DNA of 64,000 nucleotides from Guillardia theta CCMP2712 (lineage: Eukaryota; Protista; Cryptophyta): the NCBI RefSeq assembly GCF_000315625.1, contig NW_005434460.1:5217-69216 (forward strand), written 5' to 3'. A program made the translations under genes and the position numbers. This document shows positions 57,983 to 64,000 of the stretch, piece after piece; the first letter of the stretch is position 1, and every line of letters begins with the position of its first letter. The notes under the pieces were generated by a model. It worked only from the letters and a program-made list of their open reading frames with translations, had not been told where the DNA came from and ran no database searches.

Positions 57983-58190
57983 GTCGGGTTTAGGGTTTGT
58001 CGGGTTTAGGGTTTGTCGGGTTTAGGGTTTGTCGGGTTTAGGGTTTGACGGGTTTAGGGTTTGTCGGGTTTAGGGTTTGTCGGGTTTAGGGTTTGACGGG
58101 TTTAGGGTTTAGGGTTTAGGGTTTAGGGTTTAGGGTTTAGGGTTTAGGGTTTAGGGTTTAGGGTTTAGGGTTTAGGGTTTAGGGTTTAGG
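57983..58190 (+). repeat. Telomeric repeat tract: 16-bp variant units then pure TTTAGGG
   Basis: 57983-58100: about 8 units alternating G(T/A)CGGGTTT and AGGGTTT. 58101-58190: (TTTAGGG)12 plus TTTAGG. G-rich strand is on +. Confidence 0.97.
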
Positions 58191-58266
58191 CACTGAAGTA
58201 TATCAGAGGAGGGAGCAGAGCAGAAGCACGGCTGCCATAAGGGCCAGCCAAGTCGGGCCGAACTGC

Positions 58267-58468
58267 CAGGTTCCTTATTTCCTGGCAGGTTCCTTATTTC
58301 CTAGGAGGTTCCTTATTTCCTGGCATGCAGGTTCCTTATTTCCTGGCATGCAGGTTCCTTATTTCCTGGCATGCAGGTTCCTTATTTCCTGGCATGCAGG
58401 TTCCTTATTTCCTGGCATGCAGGTTCCTTATTTCCTGGCATGCAGTTTCCTTATTTCCTGGCATGCAG
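58267..58468 (+). repeat. 5' UTR tandem repeat, 9 units (19-23 bp)
   Basis: CAGGTTCCTTATTTCCTGGCATG; the first two units lack CATG. Confidence 0.95.
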
Positions 58469-58538
58469 ATTTGCGGTACCCCTGCGCTGGTGGAGTAAGA
58501 GCCGCCAGGAACGACGGAAGCTTGGGAAACCATTGAGA

Positions 58539-60686
58539 ATGCTCCGAAGCATGTGGCCAATATCTATTGTGAACCCTGACGAGATCGTGCAGTACCGTAC
58601 CTCCAGCTACCTCAAGAGGCAGACGGAAACTGGAACGATGCCGTCACCAGCTGAGCTTGTGCGACGACTGGATGACTTCGCAAGGCAGAATCCCAAAAGC
58701 AGGACGAGCAAAGCTCTGAAAGCCAAAGAGATATCCTTGGAAGCCTTAGCCGAAGCCATCAGTCACACATGCAGCTTTGCTGAACCTTCACCACTGGAGA
58801 GTCTGAAAGGTCTCGGGCAGTGGGGTGATGATGCCAGGCAGTGGTACCTGTCCGAATTTCTAGCAGACAGGCAACGGCAGATGGAGGCCAGGTCTTATGA
58901 TGACCAGGGCACGAGTGTGCAGACGATTACCATGAAGGTACTAGGGATACCTGCATACTTCTCCAGACAGGTTGAAAACTTATGCGTCAAGCTGGAAGAG
59001 CAAGGCCTGATCGTAGATCAGACGCAAGACAGCAGGAGTTTGATCTTCAAGGCTCCCCTCAAGCCTGACCTGGCGAAGGCAGAAGAGATCCCAGCAGTGA
59101 TCACCTTTGTCCGCAACGAGGCGGCAGAGAAATTCTGGAAAGGAGAAGGTACCTTTAAGGTGGCTGGAAGGAGGATCCTAGCAGTGAACCCAGCAGCCAA
59201 CCCACCGATCTCGTTCAAGATGCGACCAAAGAAGGAGAACATGGGCAGAGTCGGAATCCTAGCGGAGGTGGCCCAACTCCTTAAGCTCAATGATTCGAGT
59301 ACAGGTGATATATGTGAGATCTACAGGCAGTTGTGCTTGAAACAGGGCCTAGCAATTATCGACCTGATCCCAAACGCGGGAATGACAGTGAACCTCCCCC
59401 CCAAGAGGAACATGCCGCCAAAGAAGGTGTTTGCAGCGGTAGGAATAGACACAGTCAACCAGAACAGAGAGGTAGACTGGATCGCGACTTGTTCGAGCCT
59501 GGAAGTAGCGGACATCGTCCTCCAGGCATTCGATCGACATGGAAAAGATCGAGCAGGAGTCACTTTGGGATTGGTCTCAGAGAATGACAAAATACTGAAA
59601 TGGTTTTCAGTTCAAATGGAAGCAACGACTATGCTCAAGCATACGAAGAATGCTGTGCGACAGGAGGCGGCAACGGCAACGGGGGCAGAGATGCTGTACT
59701 CAGTGCAAATCTCCTCCCCAGTGCCATCAGGGAAGTTCTCTCGAAGTGAGATTGAAAAAATCTGCGCCAGTGACGAAACGGGCAGAGCCAAAGTCATCCG
59801 AAACATCCGGAGGTCTGTCGCATGCTGGGACCCACAGGTTGAAAAAGAGCTGCAGCGGGTACACATCCAATGTGACGCAGAGACGGGGATGTGGGATGGG
59901 TCTGGAATTATTCTCAGGCTACGAAGTGAAAGGAGTGCAAGAAAGATGATGGCTGAATTCCCCACACACCTTCTCTGCTGGCAAGGCACAGTTGAGATCC
60001 AGACGACAGCAAGTAGTCTGAACCTCAAAGTGTCGCCTCAGGCAACACAGGATCAATCTGACCAAGCCAGATCACAAACGCCGGGAACCAGAGCAGGCGG
60101 AACCGTGTGGAAAGAGATTGAACTGAACTCAATCATCAACGAAACAAACCTGCCCGACGCGGAAGCAGAGGTAGTAATTGCTGAGATCAAGACAGCTATC
60201 GCGGAAGTAGTTAACAATGACCTACAACAGCAAGGAAAGACCTTACTTCGTCTTGACGATGCTGTGCATGACATGCAGGTCGCCTTAGACAGTCCAGGCA
60301 ACGCGTCCTTCTCCACGCTGCAAGAATGGGCTGATAAAGGCACCGGAGCGACATGGGATACCCAGAGTAAGGGCTTCAAAGAGCGAGTCCAACGAATCGT
60401 TGAGAAGCATACATGGAAGGTCGCGAAGCGCAAGCAAAGCGCTTTTGCCCCCAAAGAAGAGAAGCAGTTTAAGACTGACCTGCTCTTCATTGCACTGAAT
60501 AAATTCCTAGAGGAGACAGTAATCTCTTCGGTAGGAATGCTGGGAGATAACGACGAACTAAAGTTCATGTTGAGCACTGAACTACAGATGAAAGAGGCCG
60601 GAATGGAAGAGGAACAGGAGGAAGGGAGCAAGGCGGACGACGCAGAGGGGATGTCACTAGACTCCCCCCCTGCGGCACAAGCTTAA
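58539..60686 (+). CDS. Retrotransposon ORF1 (no CCHC knuckle seen; possible RRM-like folds)
   Basis: Uninterrupted ORF. The track start at 58371 lies inside the repeat; first unique ATG is 58539. Ends with TAA at 60684-60686. Confidence 0.75.
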   Translation: MLRSMWPISIVNPDEIVQYRTSSYLKRQTETGTMPSPAELVRRLDDFARQNPKSRTSKALKAKEISLEALAEAISHTCSFAEPSPLESLKGLGQWGDDARQWYLSEFLADRQRQMEARSYDDQGTSVQTITMKVLGIPAYFSRQVENLCVKLEEQGLIVDQTQDSRSLIFKAPLKPDLAKAEEIPAVITFVRNEAAEKFWKGEGTFKVAGRRILAVNPAANPPISFKMRPKKENMGRVGILAEVAQLLKLNDSSTGDICEIYRQLCLKQGLAIIDLIPNAGMTVNLPPKRNMPPKKVFAAVGIDTVNQNREVDWIATCSSLEVADIVLQAFDRHGKDRAGVTLGLVSENDKILKWFSVQMEATTMLKHTKNAVRQEAATATGAEMLYSVQISSPVPSGKFSRSEIEKICASDETGRAKVIRNIRRSVACWDPQVEKELQRVHIQCDAETGMWDGSGIILRLRSERSARKMMAEFPTHLLCWQGTVEIQTTASSLNLKVSPQATQDQSDQARSQTPGTRAGGTVWKEIELNSIINETNLPDAEAEVVIAEIKTAIAEVVNNDLQQQGKTLLRLDDAVHDMQVALDSPGNASFSTLQEWADKGTGATWDTQSKGFKERVQRIVEKHTWKVAKRKQSAFAPKEEKQFKTDLLFIALNKFLEETVISSVGMLGDNDELKFMLSTELQMKEAGMEEEQEEGSKADDAEGMSLDSPPAAQA

Positions 60687-63600
60687 TGGACGCAGGAACA
60701 GGAGGAGACGAGGGCAGGTGGGACAATTGGCACAAGGGTGAGGTGGAAGGACAAGAAGGTGAGAAAAACAAAGACAAAGAAAATCAAAAAACGGCACAAA
60801 CATTCGACCTAGTAGGGGAGATCCCCTGGAGTCGAAGGGAACAAAACAGAGAATATGGATTAGCGGCGCTACTCAACTCGGGAGAAGCTGGCTTTCTCTC
60901 CGAAGATGTTGTGGAGGCGATAATCCTCGAGGCAAGCGAAGGTATCGAACCATTGGAAGACAGATTTCAAGTAGCATGGCTACGAGACAAGAGGTACGCG
61001 AGCGCGCAAACTAGAAACCAGGTCGAGTCGCCGAGAGGGACTATTGTCCTCCCGAGAATAGTAGCTTGTTTGAGAGATCAAGAGGGGAGGACAAAGAGAG
61101 CAAAGCGACTACTAGCCGGGGCAGCCCAGCCATTCTTATTCCCGTGCGTAGAGAATGGCAATCATTGGATTCTACTAATGGCAGATTTTGACACAAAAAG
61201 AATACGCATTGTTGATTCACTCAGCACGGCTGAGAGAGACTTGGGGATTGTCAGAAGTCAAAGGGAGGCACAGTTTCAGCTGGAGGGCGCACAACGAATG
61301 GACTTAGCCACACTCGCGGCGACGATTGTCACGGAGGCGTTCAGCGACCAGCAGGAACATGCAACGACATGGCGGGTTTACCTGTCAACTGAGCTACAAC
61401 AAACAGACAATCACAACTGTGGGATCTTCATACTGTTGCATTTGCTGTTGATCGCAAAGACAAACAGACCGACACAACGAGACATCTCAAAAACAGGTAG
61501 GCAGCAAGGCGTCCCCCCGCCCCAGCAATGGCTCGAGAGGATGAGGCACCTGCTGCTGGATGCGCTTTGGGTGGAGGATCCAGGAAAAGTGCGCATGCGA
61601 GAAACGATCAAAGGCATCTGCAGAGCTTTACAACACGCGCAAGATAAAGGGTACAAGGAATGGCAAGCAGCAGAGGTGACCCAGGCACAAGAGATGGAGC
61701 AGGGAGAGCAAGAACCGTGGCAAGCGAGAAACATGGCGGACCTGCGGACATATGAAAGGTCAGAACAGATGGACTCACTACCGCCGCAGGCCACATCGCT
61801 CCCCCCAGCGGGCAAGCACAAAGAACAAGCTTCGAACGATGTAAGGGGAACTAGGGAGGAGGAGGAGACGCACTCCCCGGCAAGAGATCGAAGGGGAGTA
61901 CCACATCAACTTCAATGGGCCAATAGGGAAGAGGAACAAATACTAACAACAGGTAGAAAACCTCACAATGCAATGCGAACAGAAAGATCAGAGCAACCAT
62001 CATGGGTGGAGATGCACAGAAAGGATAACACCCCAGGCAACATCATCTCTCAAAATGTTAATGGGTGCAGCCAGTTTGTGCTGAAACACATCTTGGGATA
62101 CCTGATTGAGACATACCAGCCGAGCGTGGTAATGCTGCAGGAGGTCTTGGTAGGGGGGAGGAGGAAAGAGATAGCTCTCCGAACGATGATCAAGAAGGAA
62201 TGGGGATGCTATCGAGTATTTATCACGAAAGGCACGGGGGGCGGGAGAAAGGGTAAGAGTGACCTACGCCTCATGACATTAGCGCATGCTGACCTTGCAC
62301 CTCGCCCCCCCCTGCCATGGCACTTCGCCATGGAAGAGGAGCGCGAGGTCTCCCAAAAAAGAATACAGGTTTTACACGTTGGCCGCAAAAAAGAAACAAT
62401 AGTGTTGGCGAACGTACATTTCCCTATCGCATCGGAGGGGAGAGACCGAGACAACATGTGGAAGGCACTGAGCCAGATGCTCAAGATGGACCCAAACATT
62501 AAGCTCAGCATCGTCGGAGGCGACTTCAACGCATCTCGAAAGCTTGCAGAGATCTGCACGAGAGTAGGGTACGGGATCAACTCGAACGTGCACCGCGCAG
62601 ATGAGGAAATGGAACGAAACTTAAATGAGCTGGGGCGATATCAGATGGTCACCTGCGAAAAGATGAGCAGAAGCAGTTCGCATTTCACCTTCTCCACATG
62701 GTACAAACAGGGCCACCACCAAGCCAAATTAGACCATGTCTTCGCTCTGCATCATTCATCTCGCACAGTAAGCCTGATATCAGAGACCGCAGAAGACTGC
62801 ATCATAGGAGCCGCAGTCGATCACAGGGCACTGGTGGTGAATGTGACTGCGCTAGATGATAAGGGCGAACAATTTATTCCAACGGTTGAAATGCTCACAC
62901 AAAGGAAGGACCGAGATGCCATTCTTCGACGAAAGAAGCGGGTGGTAGAGATAGAAAAGATATCGGGACGACTAGGCGTGGAATGGGCAATGGCTCTCGA
63001 CGAGAAGATACAAGCGGCACAAGCTCTACAGCAAGATTGCGACATTATCAATTTGATAACAACTGCCCTTCCCATTAAGGAAATCCCCCTACGAACCTCA
63101 GGTGGGAAGCGATACTCATCGAAGATTCAAATGGACCTGAAAAGGAAGATTAAGCAACTTCGCAAGGATCTGAGAAGCGCATCAGAAATCACAGACTATA
63201 TTGATCGTGCACACAGGGAGTCGAGTATCAACGCCGAACTAAGAGAGACTATGATCAAATTCAAGGAGATCTGCACCGAACAGGACCAACAAACCTTCCT
63301 GAAAGCTTGCGAGGAACGCCGACGACGACTGGGCACGATAGGGAGTAAAGAGTCCCAGAATGCAATGGGGAAGAAATCAGACTATAAGCCCAAAGCCCCA
63401 ATGAGTAGCCAACTGCCAGAGAAATGCCACCCAAATACAATTGAACTCACCTCATGGAGCGATCTCCAACCAGCGCTGCAGCGGTCAGAGCTAGAGTATT
63501 TACAGGACCTGGATCCGCTGATGGAAGCATTCCTGCAAAACAGCTCCAAAGAATCAAGCAAAACTTTTTGGAATGCAAAACATCAAACCTTACTGCACGT

Positions 63601-64000
63601 TGAGGTCCTCGGGGCGGGAAATCAAACATCAAAGAAGCTCTCCCTCACCGTGGCGCCAGCACATTTGATTGTACAAATCATTCGGAAACTGCTCCCACAA
63701 CCAGGAGGGTGGCGCCTAGAAGGATACAAGAACATCGAGCAATTTCTCCCTATGAGATTGGCTAGCGAACTCGAAGATGAAACCCACACGGCAACCTTCT
63801 TCGCAGTCAACGGCTGCACGACGAATGGAACCTGCGCAAAGGCGGAGTGTCAAACACGAGGACGACTGATCCCGCTATATGACAAAGGTCAGAAGAACGA
63901 AGAAACGACGATCCTCTTCTTCTGCAAACAGTGTCAATCATTCACCTCCGTCCAACCACCGGAATTCAACTCTCCCACGAACATTGATCAACACCCCGAC
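60686..64000 (+). CDS. Retrotransposon ORF2: Ulp1/C48 protease + APE endonuclease + Cys cluster (3'-incomplete)
   Basis: Manual translation from ATG 60686 is open to the window end (1105 codons). Protease FLSEDVVE...FPCVENGNHWILL...IVDSL...QQTDNHNCGIF. APE IISQNVNG, VMLQEV, ANVHFP, GGDFNA, LDHVF, VDHRAL. Confidence 0.9.
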   Translation, partial: MDAGTGGDEGRWDNWHKGEVEGQEGEKNKDKENQKTAQTFDLVGEIPWSRREQNREYGLAALLNSGEAGFLSEDVVEAIILEASEGIEPLEDRFQVAWLRDKRYASAQTRNQVESPRGTIVLPRIVACLRDQEGRTKRAKRLLAGAAQPFLFPCVENGNHWILLMADFDTKRIRIVDSLSTAERDLGIVRSQREAQFQLEGAQRMDLATLAATIVTEAFSDQQEHATTWRVYLSTELQQTDNHNCGIFILLHLLLIAKTNRPTQRDISKTGRQQGVPPPQQWLERMRHLLLDALWVEDPGKVRMRETIKGICRALQHAQDKGYKEWQAAEVTQAQEMEQGEQEPWQARNMADLRTYERSEQMDSLPPQATSLPPAGKHKEQASNDVRGTREEEETHSPARDRRGVPHQLQWANREEEQILTTGRKPHNAMRTERSEQPSWVEMHRKDNTPGNIISQNVNGCSQFVLKHILGYLIETYQPSVVMLQEVLVGGRRKEIALRTMIKKEWGCYRVFITKGTGGGRKGKSDLRLMTLAHADLAPRPPLPWHFAMEEEREVSQKRIQVLHVGRKKETIVLANVHFPIASEGRDRDNMWKALSQMLKMDPNIKLSIVGGDFNASRKLAEICTRVGYGINSNVHRADEEMERNLNELGRYQMVTCEKMSRSSSHFTFSTWYKQGHHQAKLDHVFALHHSSRTVSLISETAEDCIIGAAVDHRALVVNVTALDDKGEQFIPTVEMLTQRKDRDAILRRKKRVVEIEKISGRLGVEWAMALDEKIQAAQALQQDCDIINLITTALPIKEIPLRTSGGKRYSSKIQMDLKRKIKQLRKDLRSASEITDYIDRAHRESSINAELRETMIKFKEICTEQDQQTFLKACEERRRRLGTIGSKESQNAMGKKSDYKPKAPMSSQLPEKCHPNTIELTSWSDLQPALQRSELEYLQDLDPLMEAFLQNSSKESSKTFWNAKHQTLLHVEVLGAGNQTSKKLSLTVAPAHLIVQIIRKLLPQPGGWRLEGYKNIEQFLPMRLASELEDETHTATFFAVNGCTTNGTCAKAECQTRGRLIPLYDKGQKNEETTILFFCKQCQSFTSVQPPEFNSPTNIDQHPD

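Follow-up and report, generated by a model that had tools for sequence, protein, structure and literature searches.

An element joined to telomere repeats

The 64,000-nucleotide (nt) stretch analyzed here, hereafter the window, comprises positions 5217-69216 of contig C214 in the 87.1 Mb, 669-contig assembly of the cryptophyte alga Guillardia theta CCMP2712, which is also the genome searched throughout, and toward its right-hand end it carries the 5' part of a long interspersed nuclear element (LINE) joined directly to a tract of TTTAGGG repeats. Comparison of this copy with its relatives leads us to conclude that it very probably belongs to a ~10.5-kb cryptophyte LINE of the Dualen type that inserts into telomere repeats by target-primed reverse transcription. 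For the window family, as for at least four sister families, (TTTAGGG)n is the only insertion target, the sense strand of the targeted insertions always being the G strand and their 3' end always lying toward the chromosome tip. The window element itself is the innermost member of a chromosome-end array.

TTTAGGG is the telomere repeat of the G. theta genome: a four-unit pattern gives 1775 matches genome-wide against 0 in the control, and it appears as the C strand at contig starts and as the G strand at contig ends. In the window, a perfect tract of 93 nt (58098-58190, plus strand) has its G strand pointing to the contig end, finishes in the phase TTTAGG, and represents target DNA upstream of the insertion; the element, beginning CACTGAAG, starts at 58191 directly after this TTTAGG, and on direct reading there is no spacer. 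The centromere-side border of the tract is a variant telomere-associated repeat with a 16-nt unit, GTCGGGTTTAGGGTTT, that includes GAC variants (57983-58097, plus strand; direct reading and Tandem Repeats Finder, TRF), beyond which lies unique DNA. Other chromosome ends show different degenerate borders of the telomere tract, as at L035:1009-1164.

An initial annotation, made from the letters alone, had described a spacerless junction at 58190/58191, a tandem-repeat 5' untranslated region (UTR) behind it, and two open reading frames (ORFs), the second open for at least 1105 codons, in an apparently intact element. The junction and both frames read as described, whereas the tandem-repeat leader begins only at 58272, because the first 81 nt of the insertion (58191-58271, plus strand) are foreign. 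This segment recurs about 40 times in the genome, in every other case inside the 3' UTR of a (CTA)n-tailed partner family and flanked by that family's own sequence; its joining to the leader of the window family is seen only in the window, at the microhomology CAGGT. To judge from this arrangement, the segment probably arose when reverse transcription, as it ended, switched templates and went from the LINE RNA to that of a partner. The leader proper (58272-58468, plus strand), delimited by TRF and by comparison of copies, is a family-specific tandem repeat of 19-23 nt units with the core GGTTCCTTATTTCCTGGCA, which TRF reports as a 23-nt unit repeated 9.1 times at 58267-58468, and it may serve as a promoter. 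A unique portion of the 5' UTR follows on the same strand (58469-58538, direct reading).

ORF1 (58539-60686, plus strand) encodes 715 amino acids (aa) with no known domain: Pfam gave no match for it or for its counterpart in the metagenomic relative L062, and an Atlas feature search scored at most 0.77, below a meaningful score; its paralogues carry annotation as hypothetical GUITHDRAFT proteins. ORF2 starts at 60686, overlaps the ORF1 stop by one base (TAATG), and occupies the rest of the window on the plus strand. Since window position 64000 coincides with the end of contig C214 (69,216 bp), its 1105 codons reflect an assembly truncation, so that the element is intact only in the sense that its in-window part is open; the contig end cuts the copy, in addition to the foreign sequence at its head. 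In sister copies and metagenome relatives the full ORF2 measures ~2530-2575 aa and adds a reverse transcriptase (RT), a CCHC knuckle and a restriction-like endonuclease (RLE).

Within the window, ORF2 bears a Ulp1/C48 cysteine protease domain at aa 152-264 (61139-61477; Pfam E 2.7e-5, above cut-off), in which the catalytic His, Asp and Cys motifs are all there (NHW, VDS and NHNCG); Peptidase_C48 also matches the intact relative L062 (E 2.8e-9), and the protease is of the cryptophyte C48 type, not of the Josephin-like type of Chlamydomonas. An apurinic/apyrimidinic endonuclease-like (APE) domain at 62030-62833 matches Exo_endo_phos below the Pfam cut-off (E 0.0067), with the complete set of motifs in place (SQNVNG, LQEV, GGDFNAS, LDHVF and VDH), and a small profile built from this region with relatives matches the endonuclease of L1 ORF2p at E 3.4e-5. 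Such profiles were used in place of single-sequence searches of the PDB, which gave no significant match for either the APE region or the C-terminal half. Between APE and RT, sequence inspection reveals a Cys-rich motif, CTTNGTC ... CKQCQSF (63815-63943).

The RT is matched by RVT_1 in the sister copy on C141 (E 2.4e-17), whose ORF2 continuation also matches the zf-RVT knuckle and has one frame break inside the RT, and in L062 (E 1.2e-28); scored against solved relatives, R2 (E 1.3e-12) comes ahead of L1 (E 1e-7). The CCHC and RLE region was tested in the same two copies, beyond the end of the window's contig. An alignment of 26 diverse homologues of the C-terminus has conserved CCHC, AHN, PDG, E-x-R and K..Y columns, and the corresponding profile matches the part of R2 proteins that holds their zinc knuckle and RLE (E 2e-21). 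AlphaFold, given this alignment, models the domain with a pLDDT of 94 (33 from the single sequence, so that the alignment is needed), and in Foldseek R2 accounts for all of the top seven matches to the model (best E 2.7e-9, TMq 0.68). The C-terminus of ORF2 is hence predicted to be an R2-like RLE placed after a CCHC knuckle.

Between families, dN/dS (the ratio of nonsynonymous to synonymous substitution) is 0.14 for ORF1 against a sister family and, along ORF2, 0.28 where Ulp1 and APE lie, 0.11 in the middle and 0.16 from the RT to the RLE, values that point to purifying selection on ORF1 and on every part of ORF2, both nucleases included.

Insertion into telomere repeats

Sister copies of the window element, 97-99.4% identical, lie on C141, C181, C133, C28, C486, C260 and C2, and the full length of the element is ~10.5-10.6 kb. 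The C181 copy extends to the 3' end, where it shows a 12-nt motif, CTAATAAACTCA, a (TAA)n tail, the join TA/GGG and five telomere units, beyond which begins the 5' repeat leader of a different family. This order holds at 3' junctions in general, the motif being followed by a (TAA)n or (CTA)n tail and then by TA/GGGTTTAGGG; the join tail-TA/GGG is constant, while the tail may be (TAA)n, (CTA)n or absent.

Genome-wide, the 3' motif has 175 matches against 3 in the control, and AGGGTTTAGGG is found within 4-34 nt after it at 61 of the first 76 distinct sites (80%). The register of the junctions was tallied by script on the retrieved loci, with the window and all loci sharing 58150-58191 excluded: the phase TAGGG follows canonical 3' ends in 17 of 21 cases, and the tract before the next 5' end finishes in TTTAG or TTTAGG in 31 of 46, for a chance expectation of ~2/7. 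Other copies of the window family begin inside the leader repeat, right after TTTAG or TTTAGG.

Orientation is equally regular. All elements at the retrieved loci read in the G-strand direction; among the motif matches listed, 39 of the 49 on the minus strand lie no more than 32 kb from a contig start, compared with 2 of the 51 on the plus strand, and copies on contigs of known size are all located within ~25 kb of an end with their 3' ends outward. Copies truncated at differing 5' points (on C260, C2 and C74, including an 85-nt stub in C260) likewise abut telomere repeats, a hallmark of independent target-primed events and not of the duplication of one junction. Telomeric flanks together with a fixed position and orientation, in truncated copies as well as in longer ones, place the element in the functional class of telomere-repeat-specific LINEs.

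The initial annotation had anticipated this class, as well as a sense strand that is the G-rich strand and transcription toward the tip, and both views are borne out by the telomeric flanks and fixed register of most copies and by 3' ends that face contig ends. The flanks of 58191-58600 and of the 3' end, which it had suggested tabulating, give leaders that start after TTTAG(G) and 3' motifs that are mostly telomeric; the opposite outcome, in which most copies would have had non-telomeric flanks, is at odds with the 61 telomeric sites, and the RT that it expected downstream is present in C141 and L062. Past position 64000, where it had also looked for RNase H, the relatives supply RT, RLE, a tail and downstream TTTAGGG, whereas RNase H is not detected.

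Families, partners and relatives at chromosome ends

A search of the genome for the RLE returned 66 matches, with open frames of at most 2504 aa. There are at least five families, each with its own leader repeat of 19-23 nt, and they alternate head-to-tail in arrays with 2-13 telomere units between neighbours. The copy on C181 has a mosaic structure: its 5' 5 kb match the window copy at 99% identity, its 3' 4.4 kb match C141 at only 88%, and it contains several frame breaks, all of which implies recombination between families at chromosome ends. At one contig end, C72:413473-438506, 3' motifs point both ways (plus strand at 413473 and 431441, minus strand at 435830 and 438495), an arrangement that could stem from an inverted array, from two fused ends or from an assembly error.

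The partner family that supplied the foreign 81 nt (L046-L056; e.g., L046:2979-1430, minus strand) consists of an ORF1-like gene followed by a 3' UTR, with no ORF2. Its gene is 26% identical to aa 387-684 of the window ORF1 and runs straight on into the 3' UTR, behind which come the motif CTAATAAACTCA, common to partner and LINEs, then a (CTA)n tail and finally telomere repeats; by analogy with HeT-A or MoTeR2, this partner is probably mobilized in trans. Folding of the 3' UTR yields a stem that closes on the conserved motif in all three 3'-end types, although with z-scores of only -3.0, -1.6 and -0.7.

Some elements are truncated at the other end, being capped directly by telomere repeats at break points within ORF1, ORF2 or the 3' UTR (L037:7158-7108, L039:4444-4407 and L012:1856-1878), a pattern consistent with terminal elements being eroded and then healed by telomerase. 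The genome contains a TERT gene, marked by a match to Telomerase_RBD at C21:562211-562372 (51 bits, above cut-off), which implies that the elements coexist with telomerase.

Complete relatives of 10.4 kb are borne by three metagenome contigs from independent assemblies, L061, L062 and L064 (ENA ERZ930064, JGI 3300013126 and JGI 3300014720). Their ORF1 is 88-89% identical to that of the window element, and their ORF2 is uninterrupted over 2575 aa, collinear with the window piece and two C141 pieces at 70-83% identity; they also share the one-base overlap of ORF1 and ORF2, are enclosed by telomere repeats whose junctions with the element match those of the Guillardia copies, and are adjoined by sister families. 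A run labelled freshwater metagenome contains 84% of the window element's 31-mers, which suggests that a very close relative, or the same alga, occurs in those samples. The more distant metagenome relatives L057-L060 have no telomere repeats. Two of these, L057 and L058, encode C48, RT and RNase H in 2837 aa, with an 8-nt tandem repeat at the 5' end and (CAG)n at the 3' end, and may be microsatellite-tailed or microsatellite-targeted. Given such (CAG)n tails and the lack of telomere flanks in these distant relatives, targeting is not a property of the whole clade, and it seems to have been acquired as a derived trait in the lineage of Guillardia.

Mechanism, rival readings and known systems

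With the G strand as sense strand and the 3' end distal, the cDNA would be primed from a nick in the C strand, and priming from the chromosome terminus of the Drosophila type is thereby excluded. We propose that target-primed reverse transcription would start from a C-strand nick placed between CCC^TAAA and CCCTA^AA, the UA in the 3' tail of the RNA pairing with the TA at the primer end; this pairing, combined with slippage among the repeats, would give rise to variable tail lengths. A second cut would fall on the G strand after TTTAG(G), incomplete reverse transcription would leave 5'-truncated copies, and in the window copy a template switch would have added the 81 nt of partner RNA. Insertion again and again into the distal tract would build head-to-tail arrays, which erosion and telomerase healing would trim. 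As telomerase is present, the telomere most likely offers the elements a safe niche, and they most likely do not take over the role of telomerase. A wider proposal, which we consider doubtful, is that several autonomous dual-endonuclease Dualen families and ORF1-only partners sharing their 3' end build and buffer cryptophyte chromosome ends by a targeting that arose independently of insects and fungi. In this view one nuclease would make the priming nick in the C strand and the other the G-strand cut, and the arrays would aid end protection or length buffering alongside telomerase, in a partnership akin to that of HeT-A and TART but in a host that has kept telomerase.

Several observations weigh against the interpretation as telomere-targeted Dualen-type insertion. 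About 20% of the 3' motifs have no adjacent telomere repeat under the pattern used, and the high identity among copies could come in part from recombination between chromosome ends instead of from recent transposition. Evidence for transcription is weak: at least 58% of the element's words are present in each of 20 sequencing runs, which come from 12 studies, and several of these runs are only guessed to be RNA. Finally, Pfam finds no RNase H in the window family, even at E 10, nor in the intact relative L062, even though the domain does occur in the more distant relatives P0011, P0015 and P0024; it has probably been lost or has diverged strongly in the Guillardia family.

The initial annotation had also supposed that the APE cuts TTTAGGG, a supposition that is unproven because ORF2 holds an R2-type RLE besides the APE. 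Recognition and nicking by the APE alone, as in TRAS1/SART1, with the RLE as an accessory or as the second-strand cutter, strikes us as possible, if somewhat unlikely: in site-specific LINEs of the APE type the target depends mainly on the endonuclease (PMC7265360), the APE catalytic motifs are intact in a region whose dN/dS was given above as a sign of purifying selection, and at the N-terminus of the window ORF2 Pfam detects neither a zinc finger nor a Myb domain for DNA binding such as R2 has, which also favors the APE. Set against this are an RLE that is as intact as the APE and more conserved by the same measure, the site specificity of nearly all RLE-bearing clades (PMC4640811), and distant relatives that share the APE layout and yet have (CAG)n tails and no telomere flanks. 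A narrower concern is that the window junctions at 58190/58191 and 58271/58272 are an assembly or cloning chimera within a family that is itself real. Although the partner fragment meets the leader in the window alone and the region is rich in repeats, we find this improbable, as telomere-element joins of the same type occur at dozens of loci and in independent assemblies, and the internal join has a microhomology of only 5-6 nt, a length usual when an RT switches templates but insufficient to mislead an assembler.

Two further readings would do away with targeted insertion altogether. A non-specific LINE might gather in subtelomeres as a result of recombination and of selection being relaxed there, and breakage with telomerase healing would have supplied the telomere repeats that separate its copies; the healed 3'-truncated copies and the mosaics are indeed what it would predict, but this view is already disfavored, and we judge it very improbable, by the fixed register of the 3' junction, the uniform orientation of all copies, the 5'-truncated copies with telomere repeats on both sides, and the complete relatives in independent assemblies that are flanked in the same manner. 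Scarcely credible, and already contradicted by orientation, is a Drosophila-like end addition, in which RNA would be copied from the 3' OH of the chromosome terminus in place of telomerase. Such a process would account for terminal head-to-tail arrays with an ORF1-only partner, resembling HeT-A with TART, but priming from the end of the G strand would put the 3' tails on the centromere side, contrary to the observed 3' ends facing the tip, and neither the telomere repeats distal to each element, nor the Telomerase_RBD gene, nor the maintenance of two intact endonucleases under selection would be expected from it. The parallel that the initial annotation had drawn with HeT-A/TART consequently fails at the level of mechanism.

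Insertion into telomere repeats by a Dualen-type element can be set beside several known systems. APE and RLE together occur in Dualen only (PMC9977147), and cryptophyte Dualens have been described with SET, C48, APE, RT, RNase H, CCHC and RLE (Lescot et al. 2016, PMC5029228), so that the domain set for which the initial annotation knew of no described example had in fact been published in 2016. Dualen-1_GCr (Geminigera cryophila) and Dualen-5_CCu share C48, APE, RT, CCHC and RLE with the Guillardia ORF2, as well as a single very long ORF2 and a cryptophyte host (PMC5029228), and database relatives with SET, C48 and RT (MMETSP) or with C48, RT and RNase H match the RT-to-RLE half of the Guillardia protein, the closest named match outside Guillardia coming from Hanusia phi. 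Unlike these Dualens, the Guillardia element has a separate ORF1 and yields no RNase H match, and Pfam finds no SET domain either in it or in L062. The published elements were rebuilt from transcriptomes with no insertion target reported (PMC5029228), whereas the target of the Guillardia element is (TTTAGGG)n. The element is best classed as putatively Dualen-type, an assignment made on domain layout, to which the RT adds only indirect signs, in its better score against R2 than against L1 and in the matches to the MMETSP proteins. Chlamydomonas Dualen/RandI likewise combines APE with RLE (Kojima and Fujiwara 2005, as cited in PMC9977147 and PMC8557442) and ends in microsatellite rather than poly(A) tails (PMC3747384), although these are (ATT)n and not (TAA)n or (CTA)n; its protease is Josephin-like (PMC8557442) and not Ulp1/C48, and insertions of the active Dualen-4b_cRei are spread over the whole genome and make target duplications that are very long (PMC9977147), in contrast to the telomeric Guillardia element.

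The resemblance to SART1 and TRAS1 of Bombyx mori (R1 clade) is functional, in that all depend on an endonuclease, occupy a fixed position and orientation in telomere repeats, and coexist with telomerase repeats. SART1 also links its ORF1 and ORF2 by a UAAUG stop-start overlap. Its insertions lie at the T/A step of (TTAGG)n, with the G strand as sense strand (PMC7265360). In contrast to the Guillardia element, SART1 and TRAS1 are insect elements with an APE only, poly(A) tails and an RT of a different clade; membership of the R1 clade is ruled out by the presence of an RLE and by the (TAA)n or (CTA)n tails. MoTeR1 and MoTeR2 of Magnaporthe oryzae (CRE-like) have an RLE without an APE, whereas the Guillardia element has both, and their 5' ends face the tip (PMC7367193) where the Guillardia 3' ends do; the presence of an APE and the opposite orientation rule out membership of the CRE clade. 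The Drosophila elements HeT-A, TART and TAHRE resemble the Guillardia families in forming multi-family terminal arrays that include a Gag/ORF1-only partner. In Drosophila, these elements stand in for telomerase, and it is their 3' ends that are attached to the chromosome terminus. The Guillardia families differ from them in their opposite orientation, in the presence of telomerase and in insertion into the repeats themselves.

Both insects and fungi have telomere-specific LINEs, those of insects belonging to the R1 clade and having an APE only, those of fungi being CRE-like with an RLE only. The Guillardia element would represent one more independent origin of this specificity, outside both groups, in Dualen, and in another supergroup of eukaryotes. 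Full-text literature searches brought up no report of telomere targeting either for Dualen or for cryptophytes, and a curated Repbase entry may exist; the telomere-repeat specificity of the element is well supported, and such targeting appears to be new for a cryptophyte Dualen, a kind whose domain layout was already known. Because Dualen is the sole LINE group with both endonuclease types, the system is of mechanistic interest: a simple, defined repeat target and precise junctions make the roles of nucleases and strands directly testable, and ORF1-only partners, erosion and healing together offer a compact model of how telomerase and retrotransposons share chromosome ends. The data also correct the literature on this alga, since a RepeatMasker-based survey reported LINE/Dualen as lacking in G. 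theta (PMC12747079), a conclusion contradicted by at least 66 RLE-bearing copies; the discrepancy probably arises because the Guillardia families were missing from the library used.

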